The notes below the pieces were generated by a model. That model was not told the origin of the DNA. It saw only the letters and a list, made by a program, of their open reading frames with translations, and did no database searches. The position numbers were made by a program, and so were the translations under genes. DNA of 64,000 nt from Rebecca billardiae RCC1528 (taxonomy: Eukaryota; Protista; Haptophyta): NCBI GenBank assembly GCA_965240325.2, contig OZ251254.1:372001-436000 (forward strand). The letters are read 5' to 3'. Below are positions 3,895-47,044 of this stretch, piece after piece (position 1 is the stretch's first letter; each line of letters starts with the position of its first letter).

Positions 3895-4376
3895 CGCGCG
3901 CGGCCGCGTCGGCGCGCCTGACGCCGGCGCCTCCGTCAGCCGGCAGGCACCGCGCGGCAGTCCTCGGCCACATTAGCATGGCCGCCCTGGGCTGCTCGCG
4001 GCGCTCCCGCTGGTTTCCTGATGCGCCAGCGCGCTTCCGCGGGCCGCGCCGCGTGATGCAGACCGACGGTTAAGCTTATTAGGCGTGTACTATGTGATAC
4101 TACTACTACTATGGGGGTAGAGGGGCAACCTTTGAGCGCGCAGGGGGCTGGCCAGGGTAGGGCTGGAGGCTTCGGCCGCCAGTCTGATCACCCGGAGCCC
4201 GTTATAAAGGGGAATTTAATGCAGTGAAAAAATGACGAATTCGTCAATGGATTCGGGCTTCGCGCGGCGGAACTCCATCGTTTTCCAGGACGGCCGGGCG
4301 GCCCGCCGAGCGCGCACGGCGGCCGACGGACGACCTCAGCGCGCGGCGGCGGGGTAGACGGGCGCGGCGCTGGAGG

Positions 4377-18818: not shown

Positions 18819-19711
18819 TGCGTCGGCCGTGGCGCGGCGGGCTGCGCGCCTGGCGCAGTCGGCTGCGCGGCCGGCGGCTGCTGCGGCGGCTGCGCCGTCG
18901 CAGGCTTGCCCTGCTGCGCAGCAGCGGCCTGCTGCGCCTGCGCGGCGGCGGCGGCGGCGGCGGAGGGCGTGCCGCCGCGCCGCACCATGAACATCCCACC
19001 GCCGTCACCGCCGCCGCCCGCCACCGCCGCCGCGGCGGTCGGCGGCATCGGCAGCGCCTGCGTGGCTCCAGGCACGGGCAACCCGCCGCCCGCGCCGCCC
19101 GCGCCGCCGCCAGACACCTTCGGCACGCCGAACATGCCGCCGCCCGCGGGCATCGGGCGCGCGGCGGGCGGCGCGCTCGGCGGCGCGCCCGGCTTGGGCG
19201 CTCCCGCCGCCACCACCGCCGCCGCGCTGCTCGCCGGCGGCGGCGCCGCGCCCGCCGCGCCCGCCACGGCCGCGCCGCCCGCCGCCGGCCCGCCGCCGGG
19301 CGCCGGCGGCGCGCCCGAGGCGGCGGCGGCGGCGGCGGCGGCGGCGGCAGCCGCCGCCGCGCCGCCCGCGCCCGGCACGTACGGCGGCGCCGCCGCCGCG
19401 CCGCCCGGCGCGCCGCCGCCAGCCCTCGCCGCGCCCGCCGGCAGCGCGCCCGCGGGCGGCGCCGCGCCGCCCGGAGTCGCCAGCGTCGGCGGCGTGCCCT
19501 GGCCAAGCCGCGCCGCCTCTTCGCGCGCCTTGGCGGCGGCGTGCTCCTTCTGCTTCGCCGCCTGCACCGCCGCCACCGCCTTGTCCTCTTCGCGCACCTT
19601 CACCTCCTCGTTCGAGTTCGGGTCGATGATCTTAATCGCCGAGCTCTTTGGCCGCTCGACGCCGGCAGGCAGCGGCCGCGCCGGCGTGCCCGCCGCCGAG
19701 CCGGCGCCACT

Positions 19712-19751
<40 letters not shown>

Positions 19752-21056
19752 CCGCCGTCCATCCCGGCGCCGCCGGCGCCGCCGGGGCCGCCGCCCGCGC
19801 CGGAGGTGGGCGGCGCGCCCGGCCCGCCGCCGCTCAGCGGCGGCCCGCCGCCACCGCCGTACGGCGGCGGCGCCGAGCCGAGGCCGTACCCGCCCATCCC
19901 AGGCTGTGCCGGCCGCGCGCCGGCGCCAAACGGCATGCCTCCCATTGTCATCGCGCCCGGGGCGAGCGGCGCGCCGGCGGCGCCGGGCGGGCCCATGCCG
20001 CCCGGCCCGCCCATGCCGTGGTAGCTGCGCATCTGCTGCTGCAGCAGCGCCGCCTGGTACTGCTGCAGCTGCGCGGGCGTCAGCTGGGGCCCGGTGGCAA
20101 AGCCCCGACCTGGGAAGCCTGCGCCCATAGGCGGGTACATTCCGGGTACGGCGCCGGGCATCGTGGGCACCGCGCCGCCCGGCCCGCCCGGGCTCTGCGC
20201 GCCGGGCTTGCCGCCCGCCGACGGCGCGGCGGGGTGCCCGCCCGCGCCCGCCGCGGCCGCGCCACCGCCAGGTCTGCCGCCGCCGCCGCCGCCGCCGCCG
20301 CCACCTGCGCGACGGCGCGAGCGGCGGGCGCGGGCGCGCGCGCGGAGAGACAGCGGGCGCGAGGGCGGGCGAGCGCGCAGGCCGCGTGAGCACGCGGACG
20401 CGCCACGGGGGCATGCGGACCGCGGCGGGCAGGCGCGGGCTGCAGCACAGCACCGCGCCGCCGCCGCAAGCGCGCAGGGCGGCGCGCGGGCAGGCGGCCG
20501 CGTGCGGCGGCGAATCGTTGCGCACCGCGCCGCATCCGCACGCCCGGCCCGCGCCCACCCGCCCAGCTGAACGCCCGCAGCTGAACGCCCGCGCACGCGC
20601 TCGCATAGCACCGCCGCATCGCCGCGCGGCGCGGCACGGCGCGACACGGCGCGGCGCGCACCCGCGGCGCCGCTAGACTTGGGGCCACCGTCGGCGGCCG
20701 CGCCGCCGCCGCCGCCACCGCTACGCCGCGCGCCGCCCCTGCGCACGCGGCACGCACGCACGCGCACGCACGCACGCGCACGCACGCACGCCCAGCGTGC
20801 CCCGGCGCAGGCCCGCCAGAGCGCGCCGCACGCGCCACCCGACAAGAGGCGCGTCAGTACAGGCGGGGATCCCACGCCCGCCCGCGCGTGCGCGCGCGCG
20901 CGCGCGGCGGGCGCTGCGAGGCGGCCCGGCGCGGCGCGCGCACACGGCCGGGTGGCCGTGTGGTGCGGGCGCGTGGCCCGTCGAGCGCGCGGCGCAGGCG
21001 CGAGCGCGCACGATCGGCCACGCTGTGCTCCACTCCCATCAGGCACTGGCTGGCGC

Positions 21057-21088
<32 letters not shown>

Positions 21089-21223
21089 GCGCCCCTTGGC
21101 GCCCTGCTGCGCAGGCGGCAGGGGCGGCTGCTGCGGCGCACCCGCTGCGCCCTGCGCCGCGGGCTGGGCCGGCGGTGCGCCGCCCTCCGCCTTGGGTTGG
21201 TTGCTCGCGTTATTCGCACTCAT
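12562..21223 (-). CDS. eIF4G: Translation initiation factor eIF4G (MIF4G, MA3 and W2 domains). About 14 exons: 21223-21012, 20721-20662, 20304-17266, 17122-17028, 16673-16491, 16070-15504, 15289-15153, 14874-14673, 14401-14272, 14074-13941, 13801-13677, 13367-13214, 13095-12988, 12711-12562
   Basis: MIF4G LNKITPEKF...IFDKALTEP...FKRLLLNRCQEEF...[24 protein letters not shown]; MA3 ALQEYIST...LEDIAIDVP; W2 LYNSDVVSEE...KGKAL with acidic tail; splice phases joined by hand, first two exons less certain. Confidence 0.93.
12722..12780. repeat. Intronic 14-bp minisatellite (AGTCCGGTGGGAGC)x4
   Basis: Directly visible, next to the 3' splice site of the last eIF4G intron. Confidence 0.9.
16239..17012. 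repeat. Interstitial telomere-like tracts (CCCTAA)n and (GGGGTA)n in eIF4G introns 4-5
   Basis: Tracts at ~16239-16284, 16391-16410, 16807-16857, 16961-17012. Confidence 0.9.
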
Positions 21224-22266
21224 GCGCCGTGCCCGTCGCTGCTGCGTGCACACGGCTCGGTTCTGACCAAGTCGCCGCGTCCGCCAGAGAGCCACGCGCT
21301 TGCGTCCATCATTGGCCCCAGGCTGCAGTCCGGTGCTGCAGACCTGCGTCACTCCGGTGTCGCGGATACGGTTGGCGCGGGATTGCAGATTCTTCGGGCA
21401 GCCGGCGGCGCTCGCGTCCTTCGCCGCCGAACATGCCGTGTTGCTCCCGGATCGGGGCATCGAGAAAAGGAGGCCCTTCATTTCCGCGGGGTCAGGGGTT
21501 CGCGCCGGGCGGGCGTCACCGTCGACCCGGCGCTGCCGGTCACACGCCCACGCACGCGCAACGGGCGTGCGCGCTGCACGCGCTGGGGCCCATCGGGCGG
21601 AAGAGTACCGCGCGCTGTGTGCGCATCGCCGCCACCGCCCGGCGTGCTCTGCGCATGCTCTTTCGCTCCGGACAACGGATGGCCGCGGCGGCAGTGTGCT
21701 GCGATGACGAGTGCAACAACCGGCATGGCCGTGCGCGCCTCACACACGGACGCGGCGGGCTCGTGGCCGTGCAGGTACGCCGTGTCGGACCATGTATCTC
21801 GGTACCGCTCGGCGCAGCCCTCTTCCCATCGAGCCCCGCCTAGCGCTACCATCGGACAAAAGCGCGTCCGCGGGGCCGGCTACCCGGGTGGCAGTGGCTA
21901 CCGCCTTCCGGGGCGCTGGCCGTCCAAATGGCCAGGCCCCAGTGGCATGCGCGGCGTGGAGGCGTCAGCAGGCAGCAGGATCAGACGAGATAGCAGTAGC
22001 CAGTGCTGACGAATCGGCGAGGCCCCCGGAGCTGGCCTGCATCGGCAGCCAGGGCGCGGGGTGCGGAACGACCGCCATCGTAATGAGTCTGAGTAGTACA
22101 CGCCTTTAACCAAGTATGCACGTTAAATCATAGTAAACTGTAGTAGTAGGCAGTTTGGAGGATGCTCTTCCAGATGCCGCGCTGAGCCGCGTGAAAGGAA
22201 GAGCAGCGAAGGACTGGTGCCGCCTCGCGAGGTCGCGTCATCAACGAACGCGTCGGCCGCGGGAGC

Positions 22267-23118
22267 ATGCGGCACGTTCAGGCGACGCTCGTCGCCGCGT
22301 GCGTCGCGGCGTGGTGCACAACCGCGGGCGCAGCCGCGCATCGGCCCGTCCTCCAGCGCACGGCGCGTGCCACCACCGGCGCCTCGGCCATCGCGCGGCC
22401 TCTGCGCGCGCGCGCGGCGCGGCGGTCCGCTCGCGCATCGGGCGTGCGCATGCTCGAGATCGACGCGGAGACGCTGCGCTCGATCGGCCCGATGGGCATG
22501 GCGGCGGTGGTCTGCGGGGCGGACATGATCCCGGGCGCGCCCACGCAACCCATCGCCATCGCCGCGGGCGCGCTCTTCGGCCTCCCCAACGGGTTGCTCG
22601 CCGTGTGTGTGGGTCAGGCGTTCGCAGCCGCCGGCGCGCTCACTCTCTCGCGCACGCCGGCGGTGCGCGAGCTGATCCTGAGCAAGGAGCAGGAGCTAGA
22701 GTCGGAGTCGCCGAACAAGCTGCGCCTCTCGCTCAACGCCGTCGCCAAGCGCATCGACTCGCAGGGCTTCTGGGGCGTCATCGCGACGGTCGTCGGCGTT
22801 CGCCAGTCACCGATTATTCCGTTCTCGCTCGGCAATTACTACCTGGGGCTGTTCACGCGCGCGCCCCCCGCGGCGGTGCTCGCGGGCACGCTGGTGGGCT
22901 GCTTCCCGCTCAACGCGCTCTGGGTCTACGTCGGCGCGAGCACGCAGGGTGCCCTCGAGAAGGTCCTCGCCGGCGAGTCCGTGGACCCGGGTGAGCTGCT
23001 GCAGTCGCCCGCTGGCTCGGCGCTCGAGGTGCTGGGCGGGCTGGCGACGCTCGCGATCGTGGTGGCGGTGGGGCGCGCGATGGCGAGCGAGAGCGGCGTG
23101 GAGGAGGACGCGGCATGA
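22267..23118 (+). CDS. VTT/SNARE-associated Golgi (TVP38/TMEM64/DedA) membrane protein, probably with signal plus transit peptide
   Basis: IPGAPTQPIAIAAGALFG, VRQSPIIPFSLGNYYLG, GTLVGCFPLNALWVYVG motifs. Confidence 0.88.
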   Translation: MRHVQATLVAACVAAWCTTAGAAAHRPVLQRTARATTGASAIARPLRARAARRSARASGVRMLEIDAETLRSIGPMGMAAVVCGADMIPGAPTQPIAIAAGALFGLPNGLLAVCVGQAFAAAGALTLSRTPAVRELILSKEQELESESPNKLRLSLNAVAKRIDSQGFWGVIATVVGVRQSPIIPFSLGNYYLGLFTRAPPAAVLAGTLVGCFPLNALWVYVGASTQGALEKVLAGESVDPGELLQSPAGSALEVLGGLATLAIVVAVGRAMASESGVEEDAA

Positions 23119-23403
23119 CACCGGTGGTGCTGCGTGCGGGTCGGCTCACCTCCGGCTTGATGACTAGTAGCCGCTGACGGGCGCTGTTCGGTAGTGAGTC
23201 GGTTAACTCACTCGGTTCGGCAGCTGCCACTCAGAGTGATGATGACAGTATCGATATCGATCGGGTGCTGCTGATCGTTATTCGTCATCATCGTCGATCC
23301 GCCACTCTACACCACTCTACTCTCTAGTCTCTAGCCGTATCATAGTATTAGTATCAAGCGCAGTCAAACTCATTGACTGATTGAGTCATTCATCGTCTAT
23401 CGG

Positions 23404-23485
23404 ATTTAACGACACAGGTAGGACGACGCGGGTCTCCTGATGATTCGTCGGCGGCAGTGCCCGGTCGCCGACACGAAGTCAGCGT
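23404..23485 (-). mobile_element. Short dispersed repeat, probable 3' end of a retroelement (copy 1)
   Basis: Reverse complement of 35351-35410 over ~60 bp; contains a stem-loop and ends GTCGTTAAAT on the minus strand. Confidence 0.55.
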
Positions 23486-23625
23486 TGGTGCGGCTGATCG
23501 AGACGGCAACTCGCCCGTCCAGAAATAAGTGGTCGTCGTGAAAAAGCCAGGGCCCGCCCAAAAACCCCGCCGCGATTTATTTCGCCGGCTTTCCGACCCG
23601 GCGTGCGCGGCCTCCGGCTGTGTCG

Positions 23626-24679
23626 GAGGCCGCTCGAGCGACTTCGTGTCTGGCGAGGCAGATCGCGCCAGTGCGTGGCGAGGCAGACGCTCGCCTGCCT
23701 CGCCGCTTGGCGAGGCAGCTAAGCTAGTAAAGCCGCGGCCGAACTTTACGAAAGCCAAATGTCTGCCGGTGCGCCGCCCGTCTTTTGCGCACGGTGACAA
23801 GGGCGCGCGAGGGCGCTTCCTCACGATCCCGAAGAGCGCTGCGCGCGGCGTCGCGTTGGCGGCGGCAGCGGCGCTGGGGTGTATCTTGCCCATTCTGCGT
23901 GGCGGCGCGCTCTCATGACGCCTCGGCCGCCGCCACGCCATGCGCGACCGGGCGTGTCGCCTTCTTGACGGGCAGTGCACACGCCCTTGCAAGCGCACAG
24001 CCGTGAAGAGCCGAGAGCGTCCGTCGCGAGCACGCCGCCCACGCGGGATGCGTTATGCTGTCACCGAAGCCACCTTGCGCATGCGCTTCGCCGAGTTCGC
24101 CATGCGTTCAGAGCAGTCAAGATCGCTGAACGAGAGGATGTCATCGGCTGAAATGCAGGTTAGCAGTGCTCATCGTAGCTGCTACCCATGGTCATCCTGG
24201 CTCGCACATGCCAGAGCGCGAGCACCCAGTGTCATACGAATAGCCCTGGCAACGCATCCCGCGTGGGCGGCGTGCTCGCGACGGACGCTCTCGGCTCTTC
24301 ACGGCTGTGCGCTTGCAAGGGCGTGTGCACTGCCCGTCAAGAAGGCGACACGCCCGGTCGCGCATGGCGTGGCGGCGGCCGAGGCGTCATGAGAGCGCGC
24401 CGCCACGCAGAATGGGCAAGATACACCCCAGCGCCGCTGCCGCCGCCAACGCGACGCCGCGCGCAGCGCTCTTCGGGATCGTGAGGAAGCGCCCTCGCGC
24501 GCCCTTGTCACCGTGCGCAAAAGACGGGCGGCGCACCGGCAGACATTTGGCTTTCGTAAAGTTTGGCCGCGGCGTTACTAGCTTAGCTGCCTCGCCAAGC
24601 GGCGAGGCAGGCGAGCGTCTGCCTCGCCACGCACTGGCGCGATCTGCCTCGCCAGACACGAAGTCGCTCGAGTGGCCTC
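23626..24679. mobile_element. Non-autonomous foldback DNA transposon A (1054 bp; TIRs 23626-24054 and 24251-24679; TSD TGTCG)
   Basis: 429-bp near-perfect inverted arms, GAG...CTC termini, TGTCG at 23621-23625 and 24680-24684. Confidence 0.92.
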
Positions 24680-24817
24680 TGTCGTCAAGGCTTGGGCGTG
24701 CCCCCGCGTGCGCGGGGCCACTGTGTCCCGCCTGAGCCCAAGCCTGAGCCGATTTTTTTAATCAACCACGGCGCGCGAACGGGTATTCTGGAGACTGCGA
24801 TCTTCGCCGCCGCCAGC

Positions 24818-27800
24818 ATGGGGCGTCCCTCGGCACGGCGCGCGGTGGCAGCATCCGCCACGCTGCTGCTCGCGAGCGTGGGCGTCTCGCGGGCGTTCGA
24901 CACGCGCGGCGCGAGGAGACGATCCCTCCTGCCCCATGCCGCAGCGAGCGCGCGCGCCTTCACCGAGTCGCTCCTCGGCTCGGCCGAGCCGAGCGGCGGC
25001 GTTGACGCGTTCAATAGCCTCCACGACGACGACGTGGGCGGAGGAGGGGAGGAGGGCGGGAGCGGCGGCGGCGGCGGCGTGTTCGGCCACGAGGCGCAGC
25101 GCGCGATGGAGCGCGCCGCGCGCGACGAGTTCAACGAGCTCGACGACGACGACAACAACCAAGGCGGTGGCGTCGGTGGCGTCCTCGGCGCCGAGGCGCG
25201 GCGCGCGGCGCAAAAAGCGCGCGCCGCGGACGAGGCGGAGGCGGAGCCGGACTTGGAGGAGCGTGCGCTGCGGCCGTCGTACCGGCTCGACGCGTACGAG
25301 CTGAGCGCGCACGAGCTGAACAAGATGTTCGTCCCGGACTCCCTCGACCGGCACAAGTTCACCGTCTCCCCGGACGCAGCCTTCGGCGCCATCTTCAAGT
25401 GGAGCATGCTGGTCGGTGTGTGCCGCGCGCTGCGGGGGTGTGCGGGTGTGTGCGCGGGGGCGGAAGGGCGGGGTGTCGCTCGAGGAGAGTTGAGGTACGG
25501 TTAGGGGTGTAGGGTTAGGGTTAGGGTTCGGCCCAGTGCTAGCCGGCGCGGGGCGGTGCCTCGCGCGCGGGCTGAGGGGGCGTGTGAGCGCCCGCGGCGC
25601 GCCGTGCGCACTGTGCGCGCCGAGGGCGACGGGGGGCGGGGAGGGGCGGCGCGGCGGGGATGGCGGGCGCGCAGCGTGTGTGCCCTGCCCGCGAGCAGCC
25701 GCGCCGCCGCGCGGACGCACGCGCCGCCGCGCCGCCGCGCCGCCACGCGCGCACACCGCAAACCGGCCGCGCATCGGCGCCACGCGCCGCCGCGCCTGCT
25801 CCGACCGCGCACCCAACCCTAACCCTAACCCTAACCCTAACCCTAACCCGCTTCGCAGACTGGGAGAGCTACGTCCGCCTCGCCGTGGAGACGTGGGAGG
25901 AGGTGGTGGGCCCGGCGGACGCGGAGCGCCTCGCGAGCGCGCTGGAGTCCATGCCGCTGTGTCTCGCGCTGCCACACACAGTGCGGCGCGTGACACATGC
26001 AGATGAGCCGCCCGCGGAGCAATTTAAAATCGCCGCGAATTACTTTGAGAAATACGAAGAGCGCTTCGCCGCGTTCCCGCATACGCTGGCGCCGGGTGCG
26101 CGCGGCCGCGCCTGCGCGCGCGCGCACCGAGCCTCCCCGCGCCGCGCCGCCTGCCGCCGCCGCCGCCGCCGCCGCGCCGTCACGCGCCGCGCGTGCCGCG
26201 CCCCGCCGCGCGCGCGCGTGCGCGCGCGCGCGGCCCCACACGCCGGTGCGCGCGCTTACCCTAACCACCCTAACCCTAACCACCCTAACCCTACCCCCCT
26301 ACCCCGACCCTCAGGCGCCCATGCCGTGCTCGAGACGCTCGGCATGTACTCGGTCGCGCTCGCCGTGTGCTGCGACGTGCAGCCCGGGCCGGCGCGCGCG
26401 GCGCTGCGCACACTCGGCCTGGACGGGCAGCTCAATGCCATTGTGGTCGGCGCAGAGCACTCCTCTGCCGGGCAGGTGCGCGCGCGTGTGCGCGTGTGTG
26501 TGTGTGTGTGCGTGTGTGTGCGTGTGTGCGCGCGCGTGTGTGCGTGCGTGTGCCTGTGTGTGTGCGTGTGTGTGCGTGTGTGTGCGAGCGTGCGCCGGCT
26601 GCGCCCCGCGCGCGGGGCGGGCGCGGGGGTTTGGCAGCCGAGGCGCGGGTGCGGCACGCTGGGCTGCCCCCCGGGGCTGAACGATCGCTGCCGCCGGTCT
26701 GGGCTGGCCGGGGGTGGCTGGCGGGTGCCGCCGCTGTCGGCTGCCGGCTGCCGGCTGTGCGGGTCTGTCCGACGGAGCGAGCGCGCGCGTGCGCGTGTGC
26801 GTGTGCGTCGGGGGCGGGCGGCGCGCGTGGCTCGGCAGCCGCGCGGGCGCGCGCGCGCCGAGTCGGCCGCCCGCGCACGCACGCGCTCACGCGGCCCCGC
26901 CCCCTGCCCCCGCCCGCCACGGCTGTGCTGTGCCGTACTGTGTGTGCGTGCCCCCGCCCGCCACGGCTGTGCTGTGCTGCACTGTGCTGTGCTGTGCTGC
27001 ACTGTGCTGTGCTGTGCTGCACTGTGCTGTGCTGTGTGCGCGCGCCCCCGCACGCAGATGTACCTGCAAGCGGCGCTGTCGCTCGAGCGGCCGCCCTCGC
27101 GCTGTGTCGTGTTTGACGACACGCTGCACGGCGTGCGCGAGGCGCACGAGGTGCTAATGAAGGTGAGAGTGAGGGTGAGGGCGAGGGTGAGGGGGGGTGA
27201 GGGTTGAGGGGGGTGGTTTAGGGTAGGGTGAGGGTGAGGGGTAGGGTGCGGGGAGGCGTGGGCCACGCGGGCGGCGGCGTGCGCCACGCGGCGCTGGGCC
27301 GCGTGGCGCGCGCCCCGCCACGCGGCCCGAGCGCGCGGGGCCCGCGCGCGGCACGGCGGCCGCAGCGACTGCTGCCCCTGCGCGCGGCTCTGGACAGAGG
27401 GCCGGCCGACGCGCCGACCCTCCGCGCCCGGACCGGGAAGGGCGCGCACGGCCCCGCCGTGCCCAGCGTGCGCGACGGCGCCCCGCGCCCCCCTCGCCCC
27501 GCTGGCTGCTCCCACCGGCACCTGACGGCCGCCGTGTGCGTCGCGCGCGCCCGCCCCGCCGCGCGCCCGCGCGCGCGCGCCGGCCGCGCGCGCGCGCAGG
27601 CCGTCGCGTGCGCCTCGCGCCAGCCGCAGTACGAGCTCAAGCCTGCAGATCTGATCGTGGGCCGGCTGGAAGACGTGTCGATGGTGGCGCTGCGCGCGCT
27701 CTTCATGAGCGACGACGCCTTCGACGACGACCCGGACTCGGGGATGCAGAAGGAGAGCGCGACGCAGCCGGTCCGGGACTTCTGGGGCAACGAGCTCGGC

Positions 27801-27911
27801 TCGACGCGGCGCATGGTGATGGACCCGGACACAATGGACGGCGGCTCGTCGGGCGGGGACGACTCGTGGCTGTACGGCGGGAGTGGCGGCGCGGCTGACG
27901 CCGCGGAATGA
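24818..27911 (+). CDS. HAD-superfamily hydrolase-like protein (CbbY/beta-PGM-like), probably plastid-targeted; exons 24818-25415, 25859-26095, 26315-26475, 27058-27162, 27600-27911
   Basis: FGAIFKWSMLVD, LAPGAHAVLETL, MYLQAALSLERPPSRCVVFDD...EAHEVLMKAV, YELKPADLIV; four phase-compatible GT-AG introns; motif I lacks the canonical first Asp. Confidence 0.85.
25500..27247. repeat. Intronic simple repeats in the HAD gene: TTAGGG (25500-25528), CCCTAA (25812-25849, 26258-26312), (GT)n (~26485-26585), (GCTGT)n (~26965-27035), (GAGGGT)n (27163-27247)
   Basis: Directly visible. Confidence 0.9.
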
Positions 27912-28754
27912 CCCGTAGTCGCTGCGCGGGGTGTCGAGACAGCCGACCGTCGAGCGGCCTGTCACCGACAGCGAGTCACTGACACGCGGAGTGCGTGTCA
28001 CTCGCGACGAGTGTCGAAGTCACCGCCAATTTACTCGGATGAGTGATGAAGATATCGAAGTAAGTTCTGCCAATCATGATGCATCGTCGTATTTATCGTC
28101 ATCATTAAGAATATGAGTTGTACTTGGAGCGTATACGACTTCCCGCCGGTTCTTGAGACGGCAAGCACATATGTTGGATACATAAATAGATACATGGAAA
28201 TGTGTTCATGCTGTTGTCGTCAGCCGTTTGTTGGTATCTAACTTATTTCTACCAGAAGTCGATCAGATTGAGCTCAGAATCATGAGATATAGATCTGATC
28301 GGCGAGTGGCCGAAGCGACGGATAGTTGGCGCAACCCGAGCCGGTGGACTGCATGTAGTTGTCGGTACTTCTCTCGGCATTCATTTCTCCCTAAGTTGGC
28401 ATTGTCGCCGTCAGTCGCGAAGCTCGAGCGAGTTCGTCGCACCGAGCACAGATTCGCGCACCTACCCCATCCGACACGCTGATTGGCCACCGGGTCGCCG
28501 ATCCTGGAGACGGAGCCGCCCCAAAATCTCCAGGTCCAGTCTGAACCTCGCCCCGCGCGAAGTGGTTCATCGAACAGAATCTTTCTGCGCACTGGCCAGT
28601 GGCCACAAGAGGCAGCAGGGGAGGCAGGTGCGCAAGGCAAAGGCCCGGGCCCAACTGGCGGTGCGGCCCCGCAGCGTCCCTCCAGCCGCAGCGCCACGAG
28701 GGGATGATCCTCAGAGAACACCCGGTGCCCACCCGGCCGAAGCGCGCACGGGGG

Positions 28755-30302
28755 ATGGACGAGGGCCGCTCGCTGCTGCACGCGCACGCCTCGCCGCGCC
28801 CGCCCCACGAGCGGCGCGGTGTCGGTCTTGAGCTCGGGCTCCGGAGCGCGCCGGCCGGCGACGGCAGCTACTCAAGCCCGCGCGGCCTGACGATCGCCGC
28901 CGCCCTCGGCCTCGAGCCCGAGCCTCCGCTCTGCTCGCTGATGCCGCCGACGGTGCCCAGCCTCCCATCCAACGCCGGCTATCGCGCGCGCGGCGCGGCG
29001 CCGACGCGTGGCGGCCACTGCGGCGTCGAGCAGGCGCACGCCACGTCCGTCGCGTTCGCCGCCTGCGCGTCGCCGGCACACTGGGGTTCGGACTGGCCCG
29101 TGCCGGCCCGCGTGCCCTCTCCGCTCGCGTCCATCCACGCCTCGCCGCACGCTCTGCACGCATGGCCGCACGCGCCAGGGCCCGACAACGCCGGCGCCGC
29201 TGCCGAGCTGACACACGGCCTCGGCGGCGGCCGCGGTGGCACAGCCGTGCCGGCGGTGCTAGACCCGCACGCGCTGAGCGCGTTCTGGAGTGCGACGAGC
29301 TCGGCCGCGCTGCGCTTCGCGCCGCCGAGTGCCGAACCGTGCGCGCCCGCTGCCACCGCCGCGGGCGCACAGGCGACGGTGCGACCGCGGCCAGCGGCCT
29401 CGCTCTCCGGACCTTCAGCCGGTGGGCCCAAGCGGCCTCGGCTGGCCGTGGCGCAGGCAGACGCGCCTGCCCACGCGCCGCTACGCCCGCTGCAGCCATG
29501 CGCTCTGCAGCCCTGGCTCTGCGCCACGCCGACGGGCGCCGAGCCTGCAGGCTCGGTGCAGGCGGCGGCAGCGGCAGGCTTGCTTGCGGCCACGGCCGTG
29601 CTGCGCGCGCGGGGCAGTATGCCTACGGTGCCCACGGCACCCATCGCCCCTGGCGACGACGCGATGCGTGCCGCGTACTCGCAGGCGTGTCCGCCGCCGC
29701 CCGGCCTGCCCGCTGGCGTGTTCGCCGTGGGTGTCGGGGCTACGCCCGGCGCGGCAGCCTCGCGGCGGCCGCCCGCTCACCGCCGCGCCGCGTCGAGCGA
29801 GCCCAAGCGCGCTGCGTCGTCGGCGCAGCGCTCACGGCCTCCTGCGGCAACGTCGAGCACCGTGCCACGCGCGCCGCCGCCCGCGAGTGCCGTGCGCACG
29901 CCTCCGTACGTCGTCGGACCGCCCCACACGCCGCACACCATCCTGCCCCCCGCTCCGGCGGTGGCGCGCATGCGCTCCTTCTCACCCGGCCGAGCGCTCC
30001 CCGGCCTCGCGCCGCCGCACGAGCTGCCCGCGGGCGAACTCGGGGTTATGCCGTGGGCCGTGCCGGGCATGGCGGAGGCGTGCCCTCCGATGACGAGCAC
30101 GGCCCTACTCGCCCGGTTCATGCAGCTCGCGCACGCCCGCGGAGCACCTCTCGAACCGACGGGCGCAGTCCGAGTGGGCAGCTCGGCCGCGCTGATGCGT
30201 ACGCCGTTTAATGCGGCCGCGCCTGCGTTGGGGTTCGCGTCGCCGCCGCTTGGCCCGCAGGCCTCCGACGAGGTCGAGGTGCCAGATGGCAGCTATTGCT
30301 AA
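28755..30302 (+). CDS. Hypothetical Pro/Ala-rich disordered protein
   Basis: Long single ORF bounded by more AT-rich flanks; no recognisable domain; start uncertain (28704 or 28755). Confidence 0.4.
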   Translation: MDEGRSLLHAHASPRPPHERRGVGLELGLRSAPAGDGSYSSPRGLTIAAALGLEPEPPLCSLMPPTVPSLPSNAGYRARGAAPTRGGHCGVEQAHATSVAFAACASPAHWGSDWPVPARVPSPLASIHASPHALHAWPHAPGPDNAGAAAELTHGLGGGRGGTAVPAVLDPHALSAFWSATSSAALRFAPPSAEPCAPAATAAGAQATVRPRPAASLSGPSAGGPKRPRLAVAQADAPAHAPLRPLQPCALQPWLCATPTGAEPAGSVQAAAAAGLLAATAVLRARGSMPTVPTAPIAPGDDAMRAAYSQACPPPPGLPAGVFAVGVGATPGAAASRRPPAHRRAASSEPKRAASSAQRSRPPAATSSTVPRAPPPASAVRTPPYVVGPPHTPHTILPPAPAVARMRSFSPGRALPGLAPPHELPAGELGVMPWAVPGMAEACPPMTSTALLARFMQLAHARGAPLEPTGAVRVGSSAALMRTPFNAAAPALGFASPPLGPQASDEVEVPDGSYC

Positions 30303-30480
30303 GCTTCTGGAGTTGTCATGGATGCAGTCTGGACGTGTAAGCGAAGGACGACGCGGGCCTCGTCTGAAGGAGCCTAAGCGGTGTGACAACACCGTCATCA
30401 CTCCGTTGCACCGGGCGCGGAGAGTTATTTCAGTTTATTTACTTATATTCATTTTTTCCGCGGGCGGCCTGCCACTGGCG

Positions 30481-31536
30481 GAGTGCACTCGAGCGAAATC
30501 GTGCCTGGCTAGGTGTCCCTCGGCACTGGGCGGCTAGGTGTGCGCCTGCACACCTAGCCAGGGCTGGCTAGGTGTCCGCCCATACCCTCGCGTCGTCAGA
30601 ACTTTCGGAAACGAAAGTCGCGCCAAGGCGGCCCCGGTCTTCTCTCACGGCGGCGCAAGGGGCGCGGGGGCGCTGGCTCGCGATCCGAAGGGCAGTCGCT
30701 CGCGACCTCGCTTGGGCGGCGGCAGCGGCGCTGCGGCATACTGTTTGCCACCCGCGCGGCTGTGTGCGATCGCGCGGTCCCGTTCGTCGCCACGCCGCGC
30801 GCGACCGTTCACGGCACAGTCTTTCCGCACTGTGAGCACCCCTTGCCAGCGCACGGCGGCGGAGAGCCCAGACAGCCCGTCACGCGCGCGACGTCCTTGT
30901 GGGGTGCGATGTACTCACACTAATGCTAGCATGCGCCTGCGTTTTGGTGAGCCTATTCAGCATCCAGACCACTCTCTACTGCTGCAAGATGAGTCATCGT
31001 CTGCCAATCGGTCAACGAGTCATGGACAGCGCAGCAGTCGTCCATGATCCTCATGCCCACCCCGTGGGCAAGCGCGTGCCTCCGGGAACCCAAAGAACCT
31101 GGGTACATCGCACCCCACAAGGACGTCGCGCGCGTGACGGGCTGCCTGGGCTCTCCGCCGCCGTGCGCTGGCAAGGGGTGCTCACAGTGCGGAAAGACTG
31201 TGCCGTGAACGGTCGCGCGCGGCGTGGCGACGAACGGGACCGCGCGATCGCACACAGCCGCGCGGGTGGCAAACAGTATGCCGCAGCGCCGCTGCCGCCG
31301 CCCAAGCGAGGTCGCGAGCGACTGCCCTTCGGATCGCGAGCCAGCGCCCCCGCGCCCCTTGCGCCGCCGTGAGAGAAGACCGGGGCCGCCTTGGCGCGAC
31401 TTTCGTTTCCGAAAGTTCTGACGACGCGAGGGTATGGGCGGACACCTAGCCAGCCCTGGCTAGGTGTGCGGGCGCACACCTAGCCGCCCAGTGCCGAGGG
31501 ACACCTAGCCAGGCACGATTTCGCTCGAGTGCACTC
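30481..31536. mobile_element. Non-autonomous foldback DNA transposon B (1056 bp; TIRs 30481-30914 and 31103-31536; TSD TGGCG)
   Basis: 434-bp near-perfect inverted arms, GAG...CTC termini, TGGCG at 30476-30480 and 31537-31541; homologous to element A. Confidence 0.92.
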
Positions 31537-33417
31537 TGGCGGTGATGGCTATTATATGGGTCGGCGCTGCGCGTCAACTTGGGCTGGAAACCTGTTTCTG
31601 AAACGCATGATGGCACGCCGGGCCGGTCGCCCGAGCTCGGAATTCCGACGCTGCCACTGGCGCCGCCACTGGCGCCACAGGGGCGCAGCGGCGGGGCTGA
31701 CGACGCGCGCGCGTGTGCATGTCTGACCACGGCAGAGTACGCGCTGCAATGACTGGCCCGTCTGCAGCACCCCGCCCCGCGCTGTGAGTGAGAGTGTGGC
31801 CCGCGCCCAAGCGAGAAGGCGGGCCGCGGGCGGCACTCCGCCGACCTCACCGGCCGCCGACCAGCCCGCGGCCGCCTGCTGCAGCTCGTGGAACACGCAG
31901 TCGCGCGCTCGCGCGTGGAGGGCGGCCCTGCGCGTATGCGCCCGCCGGGCTTGCCGCTTCATTCGCTGGCACCGCAGGCGAGCCGCTCGTCGCGCGCAGT
32001 GCAGGTCGAGCCCTCCGCGCGCCGCCACCGAGCCGGCGCCACGCCTCGCGCTCGTGCTCGAGCTGAGGCGGCGCGTGTCGCCCGAGCCGGCGGGTTCGCG
32101 CGCGTGCGCGTGGTGGACAGCCTCGCGCGTGCGCCCGCCGCGCGCCCCGCGTCGCTCGCTTGGCGCCGCACGCGAGCCGCTCGTCGCGCGACCGAACGAG
32201 ACGTCAATCGCAAGGGCGACCCTTGGAATGGCGTGGGCTCTCCGCCTGTCGTCCTTCACGGGCCGTCGTCGTCGACGCGAGGCCGCGCGAGGTTAGCTCC
32301 GATGCTCATAGTCCAAATCTTCATCATTCATAGTATTGCGACCAGTGATTCACGAGATGGACGAACGACTGCTAGATAAAAAAAAATCGGTTCGTCAGAC
32401 GATTCGAAAGAGGGCGTATCAACATCATCACCCGCATGTTAATCATGGCGCATGCCGCATGGGCATTCGTCGCTGATTCGTGCAAGCACAATGGTTCAAG
32501 TCTTTCATCACCTCACCAATGATCATTGGACGTACCGCGTGGTTCATACTGGTAAATTTTCACACACGCATTGAACGACCTTATGATATAGGTATTGGGT
32601 GTCGTAAGGTTGCCGAGATCGAACCTCGGACAATTTCAACTTCCAATTTGTCGTTTTTACGGGGGTCTACCTTCTCCAAGAACTTCGAATTCGCGCATCA
32701 TGACGAATCTGCAGGTCCACGTCTGCGCCGATCTTAACCGTCAAACGGTGTCGATTAGATTCGCGGTTATCTTGATTATTAGGGAGGAGTACGATATTTG
32801 AACGTACGTATTGTTTGGATTGAAACGCCGCTTAACAGCATGCAATTGTTTTCAAGACACGGTGCCAAACCAGCGAAGGTGACCATGAGCGGGGGGATCG
32901 TGGTGACGGCAGGTCCACGGAGGGGGGGGATCGTGATCACGGCAGGTCACGCGTTTTGACCGTGAGGGAACCGCCACAATTTGCGAAAACGCATAAACAG
33001 CGGTTTGAGCCAAAAGCAACGCTTGCACATCGAGCATACCCAGCAAGCCACGCAGTTCGAAACGAGGTCAAAACAAGAGGTTCGTGTTCTCCCCCCCCCA
33101 AAACTCCAACTCGCACGGGTGCAAAGGTGGCTCAATGCACGACGTCCGCTTCCGCCGCCTCCTCAAATCAACCACCAAAGATTGTACGACTCTGTGCGAC
33201 TCTTGAACGTCATATGGAATGCGGCGGTTGGCGGTTGCCGGGTCCTAGGACGTTCCTACTCGTGGAAGCAGACGCGAATTTTGAAAGAGTACCGCCGGCC
33301 GTCCCAGTTGGGCCTCTGAATCGCGCCTCTACCCGCGGTGACCCCGGGCAGCACGGGCAGCAACAAGTGCGCTGCAACTCGCCTGTATCCCTACCCCATA
33401 CGACCTCTCGCACGGGG

Positions 33418-34554
33418 ATGACGACGCCGGCGCAGCACGCCCACGTGGGCGTGGTGGCCGTGCCGCTCCAGATGGACGACCCGGCGGATGATGACGACGA
33501 CGCACCCTACTACTTCGGCCGCACGCAGTGGCGTTGGTCCACCCAGCCCGGCGTCGCCGAAGCGCTCGCCGCCTCGTATGCAAAGTGCCCGCACCCGACC
33601 CTCGAGGAGCGGAAGCGGCTCGCGGCGATGGCGGGCGTGGCCCCTGTGAACGTGCGCGTGTGGTTCCAGAACCGCAGGCAGCGTGACAAGCGCGCGGGCG
33701 TGCCGCCGCCCAAGCGGCGACCAGTGCCGGAGGGCGCGCCCGCGGCGGACGGTGGAGCCGGCGCACCGGCATCGGACACGGAGCCACCTCAGGCACAGGC
33801 GGCGCCGCAAGTCCATCGGCCTGCTCGGCGCGCGAAGCGGAACGAGCCGAGCAAGCATGCCGCCATGGGCGCGGCCAGCCTGAAGGCCGGCCGTGGCCGA
33901 CCAGTCCAGGCGAAGCCCATCCCGCAGGCCGCGGCGGTGGCCTCGCCGGTGAGCGCCGCCCCTGCGCTCGGCGGCGCACCCGGCGTCACGGTGCGCGTGT
34001 GCACGACGCCGAAGGGGCACTCGCAGCAGGTCGGGATGCACAGCCAGGGGGGCGCGCCGCACGGCGCCGTGGCGGCGCAGGCGCACCGTGCGGCGCAGCC
34101 CGGCGTGCCCCCTTCGACGAGCGCGTCGTACATGCTACCCACGAGCGCCCCTGCTCACCTGACGACCAACTTGCAAGGCATGCCCGTGCTGTGGGCCGGC
34201 GCTCTGAGCGGCGAGGCGGGGCACGCGCAGAGCGCGGCCGCGGGGGCTGACCTCATGCACGACACCGCCCAGCCGCTCTGGCACCCGGTGCAGCCGCCGG
34301 CGGGCGACTCGTCGCGCTACATGCTGCCGACGCTCCCGGCGCCGCTGCTGCCTAACCCCTACATGGCGCACCATCATCATCATCAGCAGCACGCGCCTTG
34401 GGACTACGCGCACATGGCGCCGACGATGCCATCGTACAACCCGCCCTCGGCCGCGGCGCAGCCGTACGCGCAGCTATACTACGAGCGCGGTGTGCCGCCG
34501 CCGACGCCGTACCACCGCCTGCAATCCGCCGACCTGCCGCCGCACCCGCATTAG
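33418..34554 (+). CDS. Homeobox transcription factor
   Basis: ALAASYAKCPHPTLEERKRLAAMAGVAPVNVRVWFQNRRQRDK, with helix-3 WFQNRR; Pro/His/Gln-rich C-terminus. Confidence 0.9.
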   Translation: MTTPAQHAHVGVVAVPLQMDDPADDDDDAPYYFGRTQWRWSTQPGVAEALAASYAKCPHPTLEERKRLAAMAGVAPVNVRVWFQNRRQRDKRAGVPPPKRRPVPEGAPAADGGAGAPASDTEPPQAQAAPQVHRPARRAKRNEPSKHAAMGAASLKAGRGRPVQAKPIPQAAAVASPVSAAPALGGAPGVTVRVCTTPKGHSQQVGMHSQGGAPHGAVAAQAHRAAQPGVPPSTSASYMLPTSAPAHLTTNLQGMPVLWAGALSGEAGHAQSAAAGADLMHDTAQPLWHPVQPPAGDSSRYMLPTLPAPLLPNPYMAHHHHHQQHAPWDYAHMAPTMPSYNPPSAAAQPYAQLYYERGVPPPTPYHRLQSADLPPHPH

Positions 34555-35350
34555 TCGGTGCGAGCGGCGGGCTCGTCGCGCCGTCGACCGGTGCGGGCGC
34601 GCGCGGGCCGGTGGCGCCCGCTAGTTCTTCCCGTGTTCCCTCTACTTCCAGACCCATCCACTTCCAGAAGCTCGCAGGCGATGCCGCTCCTCCGTGAGCC
34701 CCGCCGCCCAGCCAGCGAATATCTACACCCACCCGGCCCGCGCGAGCGCAGGCAGGGTGCCAGCCAGCAGCCGCCGCGGCCGGCTGCCGGCCTTATCCGT
34801 CGTCGCGCCTTCGCCGTTCGCGGACCTCGTGCGGCGGCATGACGACTGCGACCGTTCGGATCGGTCGGCCGTCCAGAGACTCAGTCCGAAGCCTGCAGGC
34901 CATGCCGCTCCTCTGTGAGCCCCGTGGCACTGCTAGCGTCGTGAAGTCGTTTCAACACCTGCCCCAGCGGAGCAGCGCGAGCAACACTCGTCGGCCTAAT
35001 GAATCAGGGGAGTGAGTGCAGTATCGTGACAACACGCCCCGCGTTCATGACTCACCCGTCAGGCCGTGACTTGCGTCGTGACAGGTAGGTCGTTCCGCGG
35101 AAAGCGCGGGAGGTGTCGCGATGATATGCTGTGATGAATAGTTACCAGTGCGGTCGCAGCGCGGTGATACTTTCAAGTGTTCATCACCGTTCCCGAGTGT
35201 GATTGTTAATGACTGTATCCAATCGGAGTTCACTATGATACCAGGCGGTATTTTCCGAATATTGGCGACGGTTGGGTGTTCGATGATGTCGTGATGATGA
35301 CCGAAAAGGATGAATGGCATCATCATCGTCATCTCTCATCACCACAGTAT

Positions 35351-35410
35351 GATCGGGCACTGCCGCCGACGAATCAGGAGACCCGCTTCGTCCTACCTGT
35401 GTCGTTAAAT
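35351..35410 (+). mobile_element. Short dispersed repeat, probable 3' end of a retroelement (copy 2)
   Basis: Matches 23404-23466 in inverted orientation; ends GTCGTTAAAT. Confidence 0.55.
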
Positions 35411-36437
35411 AATAGAATGAGTATGACCCATCGATGAGTTTTCCGCGGGTAGACCACAATTGGAAAATACATGCGCCCCCCGATTGCTGTATCCTCTTAC
35501 CGCAGTTCAATCTGCTTCGTATGGAAGCAGATTTGACGGCGGCCGCTGCGCGCGCTTTGCGGCCCACCCACGCGCGCCTGGGCGTTGAACACGGCTTGCG
35601 AGTGCCCATGCATGGTCTAGCTACCCTCAGACAGCCACCAGCCTAGTACTTCCAGCTTCACCGCCTCCACGATGGCAACGCGCGGCGGCGCCGAGCTGCC
35701 GTCGTGCTGGCTGGGCGCTCGACTGGCCCGCGACACCCGGCTGCACTCCTTGCAGCCGCTTCAAGCACGTGGGCGACCGACAAAGATGATTGTAGACAGT
35801 GTACATACTGCGCGCGTTACTCTGCGCGCGTTCGCATGACCGATCACGATGAAAGTGCCCACCAGCCAGCCGCGCGGGACACACTGAGGCACGGGTCGGG
35901 CTCCTTCCTTGCGGCACGCCGCACGCGGTGTGTACACCGAGTGCAAGTCAGGCAGGCGCTTCGCGGGAGTGGTGGTATCGCTTCTTCGATTGTCTTGGCG
36001 TCGATCGCAGGCGCGACGCGCGTACCCCTCGCAAGTACACCCTCCTCGTGCTCAGTGTCACTCGCGCGGAGCCCACGGTGAGGGATCTTGAGCTCGAGGT
36101 GCAGCGTACGACCCTACGGGCGCTGAGTAGCAGCCTACCGACCGGCGCACGGGTGACGACCGTCATCCATTACGTTATGATACCCCTCCCAGCCTCACGC
36201 CGCAGCCTGACGATCACCTCCGCAGCGGTTTGAGCACCATTCCAAATCTGCTTCGTGGCATGTTCAAACGCTCGTTTGGCACTCCGCCTGGACGCCGTGG
36301 CACGGGAGAAGGGGAAGGGCGGTGGCGGCGAGGCTCGGGTCATCGATGGGTATGGTCCCAAAGATGCCCCCAAGCGTGCGCGCGCCCGCTCGCGCCGTCT
36401 ACCTGCGCGCCCAGCGCACCCACGCCGCCGCCCACCC

Positions 36438-44199: not shown

Positions 44200-45633
44200 G
44201 AGCCGGACTCCCTCAGAGGGCCCGTGCCGGACGGTGCAGGCCATTGGCCTCTGATGGAGCCGGCGGCGCAGGGCACGCGGCCGCTGGGGGCGCTCGGGGC
44301 CTGCACGTCGGCCATGTACACCAGGTGGGTGCACGCGCGCGCTCGAGGCGTCGGGGCGGGCTCGCGCTGCGCGGCGGCCGGGCGCGCGCGGGACGGGGCC
44401 GCGCCGCGCGCGCGTCGCCGCGCGGCACTCTCTCCGCCAAGCAGCGAGCAGCACCGGACGCGAGGTGGCTTATCGCCTGGGCCCACAGAGCCGCTGCTGG
44501 CCATGTGGCCGGCTGCGGCTCGACGCGAGTGGGTGCGGGTTTAAAGGCCTCGCCACAGCATGCACGCACCGATGCGGCGAGCCGGGATTTGAGGCTGGCG
44601 GCGGCGCAGCGTGCCGCCAGCCCTGAACGCCGGCGCGACAGCTTACGCTAATGTACGCACGGCACCTGCTAGGGCGCGCGGCCGGGCGCGCCGGGCGCGC
44701 GGGCACCCCCGACAGCCCCCCCGTGCCGCCAGCAGGCACAGGCACTTCACGCTGACGGCCTGCTACTGACGCCCTAGCGTGTCGCGCCGCTGACGCCGCC
44801 GCCACTCACGCCGAGCAGGCCGCGCCCGGCACTCCGCCGGGGTCAATCGGCAGGTGGCCGCGCGCCGCTGCGGCCGCGCCGCATGCACCCGGTCGTATCC
44901 GCTGGCCGACTAGCACCGGTCCGGCGGACGGCCTCGGTCAGCCCACTGCCCCACTGGCACTCCGCAGTCAGTCACCAGGCGCTCCGCGCCAGACGGCCGC
45001 CACGCGGCCACTCGGATCAGTGATGAGTATTGAGTGAGACTGTGAGTGCCGATGTTGGCCGGCGCCGATCCGCCCCGATGGCGCCGTGACGGAGTCGTAC
45101 TCGACTGACTTGCTGCGGCCCGTGGCAGAGTATAATTGACAGGCGCGAGCGCTGACACATCAGCAGACAGAGCAGTTTATAATAGACTTTATAGTGTCGT
45201 GATGACCGTATAGTACTCCGGACTACTCCGCGGGCGCGCAGGCGGGTCGGATCGCGGCCACTCTGACTCACTTAAGTCGCCGGTCGTGTCGACCGCGCTC
45301 GGGCCCCGGCAACATCTGCCCGGCAGTGGCAACGCGGTGGCGCCAGCTCGTCGGCTCGCTGCTACTAGGCCTCGGTCTCAGAAGGTGCGATCACGTCGCT
45401 GGGGAGGCGGGGGACGTGGACCGCCCGACTCAAAGCGTCGACCAATCCGGCAACCGGCGACGTCTGGCCGTGGCACGGGCTTGGCGCCTTGCCGATGGCG
45501 CGTTCTGCTTTCAGCAGCTCCACGTTGACGGTCTACCACCACGCCGTGCGGATGGCAGAGGCACGCGTGCAGCGAGGAGTCGGCACCCTGAAGCAGATGA
45601 CGTCCGGGACGAGGCTGCGCCTGGTGCGCGCAC

Positions 45634-45825
45634 TCAGTGCTTGGCGCCGCCGCCCTTCTTGCCGTGCTTCTTCTCCTCGTGCGGCTCGCCCTTGCCTTTG
45701 GTGCTCTCGGCGCCGCCGCCCTTCTTGCCGTGCTTCTTCTCCTCATGCCGCTCGCCCTTGCCGTTGGTGCTCTCGGCGTTCTTGTCCCTGCCCTTGCCCT
45801 TGCCGGCGTCGCCCTTCTTCGGCAT
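45634..45825 (-). CDS. Small His/Lys/Gly/Glu-rich repeat peptide, paralog 1 (63 aa)
   Basis: MPKKGDAGKGKGRDK...GKGEPHEEKKHGKKGGGAKH; start context, stop and 3' flank conserved with paralog 2. Confidence 0.7.
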   Translation of the reverse strand: MPKKGDAGKGKGRDKNAESTNGKGERHEEKKHGKKGGGAESTKGKGEPHEEKKHGKKGGGAKH

Positions 45826-46231
45826 GAGTTGGTGGTGTGGTGGACGGGCGGTGCCGCTACTTTTCTCTGCGCTGGCTGCCTGGCTCCGACCAGGGCGGGC
45901 TCCCCTTGCTCGACCGAGGAGTGGCGCAGGGGAACAGAGGAATCCCAACCGAAAGACCTATGCCTAATACTTGTAGAAGGAAACACGAAGCCTGCGCTGA
46001 AACTTCATTCAACTTCGTGTCACACGTATTGTGACCAGGTGACATCATTCCTCGCCAGCCTTGCCACACAATTCGCCACTCGGCTGTTCCGGCACCAATC
46101 AAAGCTTGCAATCAAACTTTTGCACGTGACGAATTATTGGGTGCCTCCCGGGAGGCAAACCTCGGCTCTTCGTGACACCGCTTGTGCCGCCCCGACCCGC
46201 CCTCCCCCACTACTCCACCGCCGACCTCCTC

Positions 46232-46417
46232 ATGCCGAAGAGGGACCAGAACAAAGGCAAGGGCGAGCCGCATGCGGAGAAGAATCACGGCAAGGGCGAG
46301 CTGCACGAGGAGAAGAAGCACGGCAAGGGCGAGCCGCATGAGGAAAAGAAGCACGGCAAGGGCGAGCCACACGAGGAGAAGAAGCACGGCAAGAAGGGCG
46401 GCGGCGCCAAGCACTGA
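46232..46417 (+). CDS. Small His/Lys/Gly/Glu-rich repeat peptide, paralog 2 (61 aa)
   Basis: Four 11-aa units GKGE(P/L)H(A/E)EK(N/K)H with synonymous variation between units (CAT/CAC, GAA/GAG, CCG/CCA). Confidence 0.72.
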   Translation: MPKRDQNKGKGEPHAEKNHGKGELHEEKKHGKGEPHEEKKHGKGEPHEEKKHGKKGGGAKH

Positions 46418-47044
46418 GTGCGCCCACCAGGCGAAGCCTCGTCCCGAACGTCATCTGCTTCAGGGTGCCGACTCCTCGCTGTACGCGTGCCTCTGCCATC
46501 CGCACGGCGTGGTGGTAGACCGTCAACGTGGAGCCGCTGAAGCACTACTCACAAGCCAGCCATGCCTCTGTCCGGACTACCGCGCCTCCACTCTCCAGTC
46601 CTACCTGGCCGGCCAGACGAATCGACTCGGTCGCCCAGCCAGAACGGCCGCGGGCGTGGGCCGGGGTGGTGCGCGTGGCCGAGGGGGCAGACGTAAGATG
46701 ACACGAATGCGGACGACTGACGACGCCGCGGGCGCGATCGAATGCTGGTGGCGGCGCCATGTTCGCGTGCGCGTCGGGCCGGCCATGAACACGACCGCCG
46801 GCACGATCGGGAAGTTCTCGGCGCCGCGCGGTCCGAGTGGCGGAGTCCACGATGTGATGTCATGCGACTCACGTGGGCGGGTCCGAGCTCACATCAGCTG
46901 GCGCAGTCGGACTGATTCAGACGCGAGTGGCTCGACACTGACAAGTACCGACGAGTATCGGGCCGGGCCCGCGCTACACTGGTACGGTTCAGCGAGTAGT
47001 AGTTGCCAGACCGTGCCGGACCGCTAGCTAAGCTATACTCAGGA

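Follow-up and report, generated by a model that had tools for sequence, protein, structure and literature searches.

We analysed a window of 64,000 nucleotides from the haptophyte Rebecca billardiae RCC1528 (contig OZ251254.1, hereafter C38, positions 372001–436000, within a 72-Mb assembly of 41 contigs). It contains two palindromic sequences, A and B, which are very probably non-autonomous, non-coding foldback derivatives of cut-and-paste transposons (class II elements that bear terminal inverted repeats, or TIRs) and members of a three-family group, A, B and C. The group is real, young, well structured internally and unclassified. Its signature, GAG...CTC ends combined with a 5-bp target-site duplication, is unusual, though no single feature of it is unprecedented, and it is possible that the elements are moved by a new transposase lineage.

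Elements A and B and their relatives

Element A (23626–24679, plus strand, 1054 bp, subfamily A1) consists of a left arm of 429 nt (23626–24054, plus strand), a spacer, or loop, of 196 bp (24055–24250, plus strand) and a right arm (24251–24679, minus strand), between two copies of the 5-mer TGTCG (23621–23625 and 24680–24684). Element B (30481–31536, plus strand, 1056 bp) is built in the same way from a left arm of 437 nt (30481–30917, plus strand), a spacer of 182 bp (30918–31099, plus strand) and a right arm (31100–31536, minus strand), with TGGCG on either side (30476–30480 and 31537–31541). The ends of both elements were set at GAG...CTC by direct reading of the letters. The repeat search returns the arms of A at 99%, and those of B as 445-nt segments (30473–30917 and 31100–31544, 99% complementary), a length that exceeds 437 nt because a few flanking bases pair by chance. 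The left and right arms differ by 3 mismatches in A and by 2 in B, and folding prediction for the single strand gives an almost perfect hairpin (−732 kcal/mol). The element lengths, near-identical arms, GAG...CTC ends and TGTCG and TGGCG duplications from which the original prediction started are all confirmed by the repeat search and by reading.

A and B had been described as strongly diverged and still collinear, spacer included, and this is indeed what the alignments show: 633 columns are identical (60%), yet the two sequences can be aligned end to end, and when C is added all 32 gap columns lie in the arms, where they are mirrored, and none in the spacer. The constraint on length that had been suspected finds no support; elements of similar length are also what common descent gives when indels are few and mirrored.

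Searches of the whole genome, to which the counts below refer, return dozens of full-length A copies (95–100% identity), relatives of B, and a set of sequences that match only positions 117–940 of B, at 84%. The latter form the third family, C, whose elements are 1076 bp long (1061 bp in one subfamily) and have ends of their own. GAG...CTC termini are common to the three families. Exact-end searches find 114 ends of A, 43 of B and 58 of C, most of them paired at a distance of 1.03–1.08 kb, which corresponds to full-length copies numbering about 50, 18 and 26, respectively (about 95 in total). The 114 A ends share one identical 23-mer (with one R position), and a tolerance of 3 mismatches yields just 1 extra match.

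Identity is complete over 1054 bp in three A copies and reaches 99.4% or more in about 15, and the median pairwise identity of the C copies is 99.3%. That so many copies are 99.4–100% identical implies recent activity, which had been proposed from the two elements of the window and now has the support of their relatives. Two mini A elements that keep both 23-bp ends (C5:2512336–2512426, 91 bp, and C32:266580–266709, 130 bp) probably arose by internal deletion when gap repair was interrupted. The only public run with matches, compared with window positions 23624–24280, contains the exact A arm on a different flank, together with a spacer variant that has two G>A changes; its reads cover the repeat and not the unique flanks. 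A second data set, probably from the same organism, thus contains additional A copies. A literature search returned nothing on foldback elements in haptophytes.

The copies show mild clustering: in 4 pairs, two full-length copies are no more than 7 kb apart, where 95 copies in a genome of 72 Mb would be expected to give about 0.9 such pairs, and the window's own A and B form one of the 4. One further repeated sequence, partly an inverted repeat, adjoins B and C copies in the flanks of loci L039, L040, L056 and L027, which suggests transposon-rich islands.

Insertion sites, terminal motifs and arm evolution

A perfect 5-bp duplication flanks 53 of the 56 copies whose ends can be placed, and beyond the duplications the flanks of the copies are mutually unrelated. 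The tally thus extends to other copies what had been read from A and B. The precise sequence of the target is another matter, since the fixed TGNCG that had been deduced from TGTCG and TGGCG does not survive: the duplicated 5-mers vary widely, and what they share is a weak consensus. Relative to base frequencies of 34% C, 34% G and 32% A+T, a logo of the 53 sites shows C just before the duplication (−1, 37/53), G as its second base (38/53), W as its third (37/53), C as its fourth (36/53) and G just after it (+1, 34/53), with p between 1e-5 and 1e-8 for each enriched position, while position 1 avoids G and position 5 avoids C. The target is therefore a weak palindrome of 7 bp, C|HGWCD|G; outside these 7 bp, palindromy is not above that of the shuffled control. 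The GC content of the flanks is 57–61% within 100 bp of the insertions versus 66–67% further out.

Among the loci sampled, paralogous empty sites exist for three A insertions, each of them in short host repeats, and in every case the site is continuous and holds a single 5-mer, which shows that the insertion is precise. The insertion at L012 has its empty counterpart at L059 (TGAGG), that at L028 at L046 (CATCG for CATCA), and that at L023 both at L026 and in the window itself (CTCCA), where a copy of the host repeat of L023 at 4143–4218 (minus strand) carries one CTCCA and no element. Exact conserved ends, target-site duplications of constant length and empty sites that hold one 5-mer are among the hallmarks of class II elements with TIRs, and all three are found here.

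The copies whose flanks do not match are also informative. Two B copies lie 17 kb apart on contig C37 (L041, C37:214409–215472, and L043, C37:231563–232705), with flanks CAACT/GGTCC and AGTTG/GGACC, respectively. Each copy is bordered by one original 5-mer and by the reverse complement of the other's, hence an inversion between two inverted copies: the flanks are explained by a 17-kb inversion through recombination between the two foldback elements, and both reconstructed original sites match the target consensus. The families provide a natural data set on the rearrangement of chromosomes by foldback elements. In one C copy, the second CTTCC is displaced by six bases (filler bases) from the end of the element. 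A B copy on contig C15 (L032), which hosts a nested element described below, has the unmatched flanks CAACC and CAGGG.

Every arm contains a 10-bp motif in three direct copies and one reversed copy, at nearly equal offsets in the three families. In A the motif is GGCGAGGCAG (direct at offsets 27, 52 and 84, reversed at 70), in B it is GGCTAGGTGT (direct at 27, 52 and 86, reversed at 70) and in C it is GGGGAGGAT (direct at 27, 51 and 85, reversed at 63). In the window, the array of the left arm of A spans 23652–23718 on the plus strand (forward copies at 23652, 23677 and 23709, reversed copy at 23695) and is mirrored in the right arm at 24587–24653; that of B spans 30507–30575 on the plus strand (forward copies at 30507, 30532 and 30566, reversed copy at 30550) and is mirrored at 31442–31510. 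The motifs are presumed transposase-binding sites: the same layout with different words is what is expected for binding sites of related transposases that differ in specificity, and the families would then be a natural data set on how a binding "code" switches under a fixed architecture.

The comparison of B with C points in the same direction. The two families are about 90% alike inward of position 117; their terminal 116 bp cannot be aligned by BLAST, and about half of the columns differ when they are aligned. Tips and bodies are thus separate modules, and such modularity would imply several related transposase specificities.

When the subfamilies A1 and A2 (4% apart) are compared, 10 of the 13 changes of the left arm are matched by the complementary change at the corresponding site of the right arm, which also mirrors both indels, so that the arms evolve in concert; the divergence is 3% in the arms and 8.2% in the spacer. 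Among near-identical A1 copies, two inherited differences between the arms have been homogenised independently: single copies have G/G or A/A in place of G/A at position 7, and A/A or C/C in place of A/C at position 106. Relative to these two markers, the spacer always keeps its orientation. Conversion of one arm by the other, for which intrastrand pairing with subsequent repair is the simplest route, would explain the identity of the arms, and the families are a natural data set on the maintenance of identity between long inverted arms.

In the mechanism that we propose, a transposase acting in trans would bind the family-specific 10-bp motifs in the first ~95 bp of each arm and would cut exactly at GAG...CTC, presumably by DDE chemistry. 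The ends would then be joined to the target with a 5-bp stagger, preferably at C|HGWCD|G in intergenic DNA that is locally less GC-rich. The arms would be kept nearly identical by frequent conversion of one by the other, probably when they pair within a strand and are then repaired, while tips and bodies would evolve as separate modules served by several related transposase specificities.

The transposase and its superfamily

The original prediction had called for longer copies with the same ends that encode a transposase, and pattern searches of the genome return none. Several observations weigh against the view that A and B derive from transposons mobilised in trans. Apart from two C elements of 1.65 and 1.38 kb and one B element of 2.2 kb, the elements with matching ends that are retrieved from the genome by searches with A ends (1 and 3 mismatches), B ends and C ends all have lengths of up to about 1.2 kb. 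No match to a hAT or Mutator-like element (MULE) domain adjoins any of the listed A, B or C ends, the binding of the motifs would be read from their position and repetition, and the assembly contains no second haplotype of window positions 19000–36000, so that neither an allelic empty site nor an excision footprint is seen.

The 2.2-kb B copy is the result of a nested insertion, with a foldback element of 1130 bp (L032:2535–3664, on C15) in the right tip of B; this nested element has CAAGGG...CCCTTG ends and a 7-bp duplication, GCCAGGC. The family to which it belongs is like A, B and C in being foldback, non-coding, young and about 1.1 kb long; its ends and its 7-bp duplication are different, so presumably it depends on a different transposase. 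A generic pattern of the terminal architecture that A, B and C share retrieves, genome-wide, these three families only, and a 19-mer conserved in the inner arms gives no long-range pairs. About 10 solitary A ends exist in the genome, at a ratio of about 8 to 1 in favour of the plus strand; at C14:1169670 and C18:1110562, 250 bp or more of the arm is preserved, unlike at the others. Solitary or odd ends also lie at C3:2992561, C11:1415323, C18:1476632, C21:593072 and C22:268150. All four ends in the genome of a B variant (…CGTCCC), at C3:1079180, C22:1319953, C29:1155701 and C34:365597, are without a partner of their own type. At C29:1152728–1155725, an A-type end faces an end of this variant at a distance of 2998 bp, which could be a composite or a longer element. 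Outside the genome, a metagenome scan with the A/B terminus gave 3 matches in a single bacterial-looking gene with no feature of an element, which we consider to be chance, and two scans of viral contigs gave nothing.

DNA transposon superfamilies are largely distinguished by their end sequence and the length of their target-site duplication, and GAG ends with 5 bp do not appear in the usual superfamily tables. According to the Repbase rule, non-autonomous elements are classed by the length of the duplication and the first 11 terminal bases; A, B and C cannot be filed in a superfamily on this basis, because the partner is needed. The original prediction claimed that the combination fits none of the known superfamilies. 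This holds insofar as none of those that we checked has a matching textbook signature, but the claim overlooked hAT5 and Ginger2/TDD, which make 5-bp duplications, and the target form of Transib, which is very similar to the one described above.

A first possibility, which we regard as an unlikely but serious one, is that the partner is a Mutator-like lineage that makes duplications of 5 bp instead of about 9 bp. Mutator elements have G(A/G)G ends and long TIRs rich in sites, foldback derivatives are typical of them, and their non-autonomous copies far outnumber the transposase genes; all this is reminiscent of A, B and C, which have G(A/G)G termini and long multi-site arms. The length of the duplication, 8–11 bp in Mutator, is different. 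For IS256/MuDR, a review gives duplications of 4–10 bp, a range that includes 5 bp. The genome also has two MULE-domain loci in addition to a giant MULE family (three weak Pfam matches in giant frames, 22.4 bits): a match at C23:328244–328534 (minus strand, 53.8 bits), within an open frame of 1051 codons that appears to be single-copy, and one at C10:1918801–1919085 (plus strand, 42 bits). Neither of the two lies near any listed end of A, B or C.

It may also be, although we consider this doubtful, that the transposase belongs to no described superfamily, and that GAG...CTC ends with 5-bp duplications mark a new one. Among the described superfamilies that we checked, none unites such termini with a duplication of this length and a target of this form, which is an argument from the absence of evidence. 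The fuller version of this idea, in which a lineage outside the described eukaryotic superfamilies moves the elements and operates with several co-existing specificities through the 10-bp motif code, is to our mind just as doubtful.

A partner from the CACTA–Mirage–Chapaev–Transib group, with a transposase of the RAG1 fold, is rather improbable. Duplications of 5 bp are made by Transib (as by hAT5 and Ginger2/TDD-4/5), and they fall in the range of 2–5 bp for the group. Transib-N1_AG and Transib-N2_AG insert into GC-rich targets, cCASTGg and cCAWTGc, which have the same palindromic form as the targets of A, B and C, C|5-mer|G. On the contrary, the ends in this group are CA...TG (CAC...GTG in Transib, with short TIRs and a heptamer and nonamer like those of recombination signal sequences), while A, B and C have GAG...CTC ends and arms of 430 bp. 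A Pfam search of the genome for RAG1 gives no match, which is weak evidence, as the control genomes matched nothing either.

Equally improbable in our opinion is a Sola-like partner, or one from a further superfamily for which Pfam has no model (Kolobok, Academ, Zator, Novosib or Dada). These, like Sola, are invisible to Pfam searches and would have escaped those that we made; there is no positive evidence for any of them, and the duplication length differs from that of all of them. Sola2 elements, for example, have long TIRs and GAG-like ends with 4-bp duplications, and it is 5 bp here.

A hAT transposase of the kind that makes short duplications is less credible still. hAT5 families with 5-bp duplications have been described, and hAT elements have arrays of subterminal repeats, as A, B and C do. 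However, hAT ends are YARNG and the TIRs are short, while the ends here are GAGGC or GAGTG and the arms 430 bp long, and the only hAT match of a Pfam search of the genome, to the dimerisation domain at C17:765118–765351, contains a stop and is remote from the element ends. The integrase-type elements, including Ginger2/TDD, have TG...CA ends with duplications of 4–5 bp, and the GAG...CTC ends of A and B do not conform to this.

Regardless of the superfamily, the overall structure of A, B and C has a well-known counterpart in FB and Galileo (P superfamily) of Drosophila, in which a short middle is likewise enclosed by inverted arms that are very long and nearly identical, whose copies are mostly non-coding, and which can cause inversions by ectopic recombination; their ends and their duplications (9 bp in FB, 7 bp in Galileo) are different. 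If the partner extends a known superfamily, such as MULE or one with a RAG1 fold and a changed stagger, it would show how the length of the stagger evolves; if it is unlike the known ones, it may establish a superfamily that is new, in a lineage of algae that has been little studied.

Coding potential and surroundings of the elements

The window is very GC-rich (62–86% per 2 kb), and the elements contain long open frames that result from GC-richness, including a frame of 358 codons which runs through C from end to end. Synonymous changes are in clear excess in none of the six frames, whether A is compared with B, A with C, B with C, or C copies with one another; in 14 copies of the 358-codon frame of C, we count 17 synonymous and 44 non-synonymous changes, a ratio like that of the other frames. 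A Pfam search of the open frames of the elements gives no match. Mismatches between A and B are in excess in the third phase at element positions 361–450 and 511–600. This is a local 3-nt periodicity of the mismatches, at 23985–24227 of the window (element positions 361–600), with five consecutive "synonymous" changes in CGN-like triplets. The idea that the arms or the spacer are coding was rejected, considering that B versus C shows no periodicity, that there is no synonymous excess and that Pfam finds nothing.

The elements as we describe them, non-coding derivatives of mobile DNA, would have to give way if the palindromes had spread by duplication or were functional hairpin-RNA genes, to which the predicted hairpin and the stronger conservation of the arms than of the spacer could be ascribed, but we give this next to no credence, because the flanks are unrelated and the duplications precise, paralogous empty sites exist, the 114 A ends are base-for-base identical and an Rfam search of the elements gives no match; spread by duplication is already contradicted by the insertion sites.

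Both elements of the window are intergenic: A follows an open reading frame (ORF) that has a VTT domain at a distance of about 500 bp, and B precedes a homeodomain ORF by about 1.4 kb. Between them are a GT/GC-rich microsatellite block (26460–26613) and GGGTGA-like repeats of the telomere type (27149–27262). Last, we note that the window contains another inverted repeat, at 45510–46541, with arms of 187 nt (97%) that lie 658 nt apart, which is unrelated to the GAG families.

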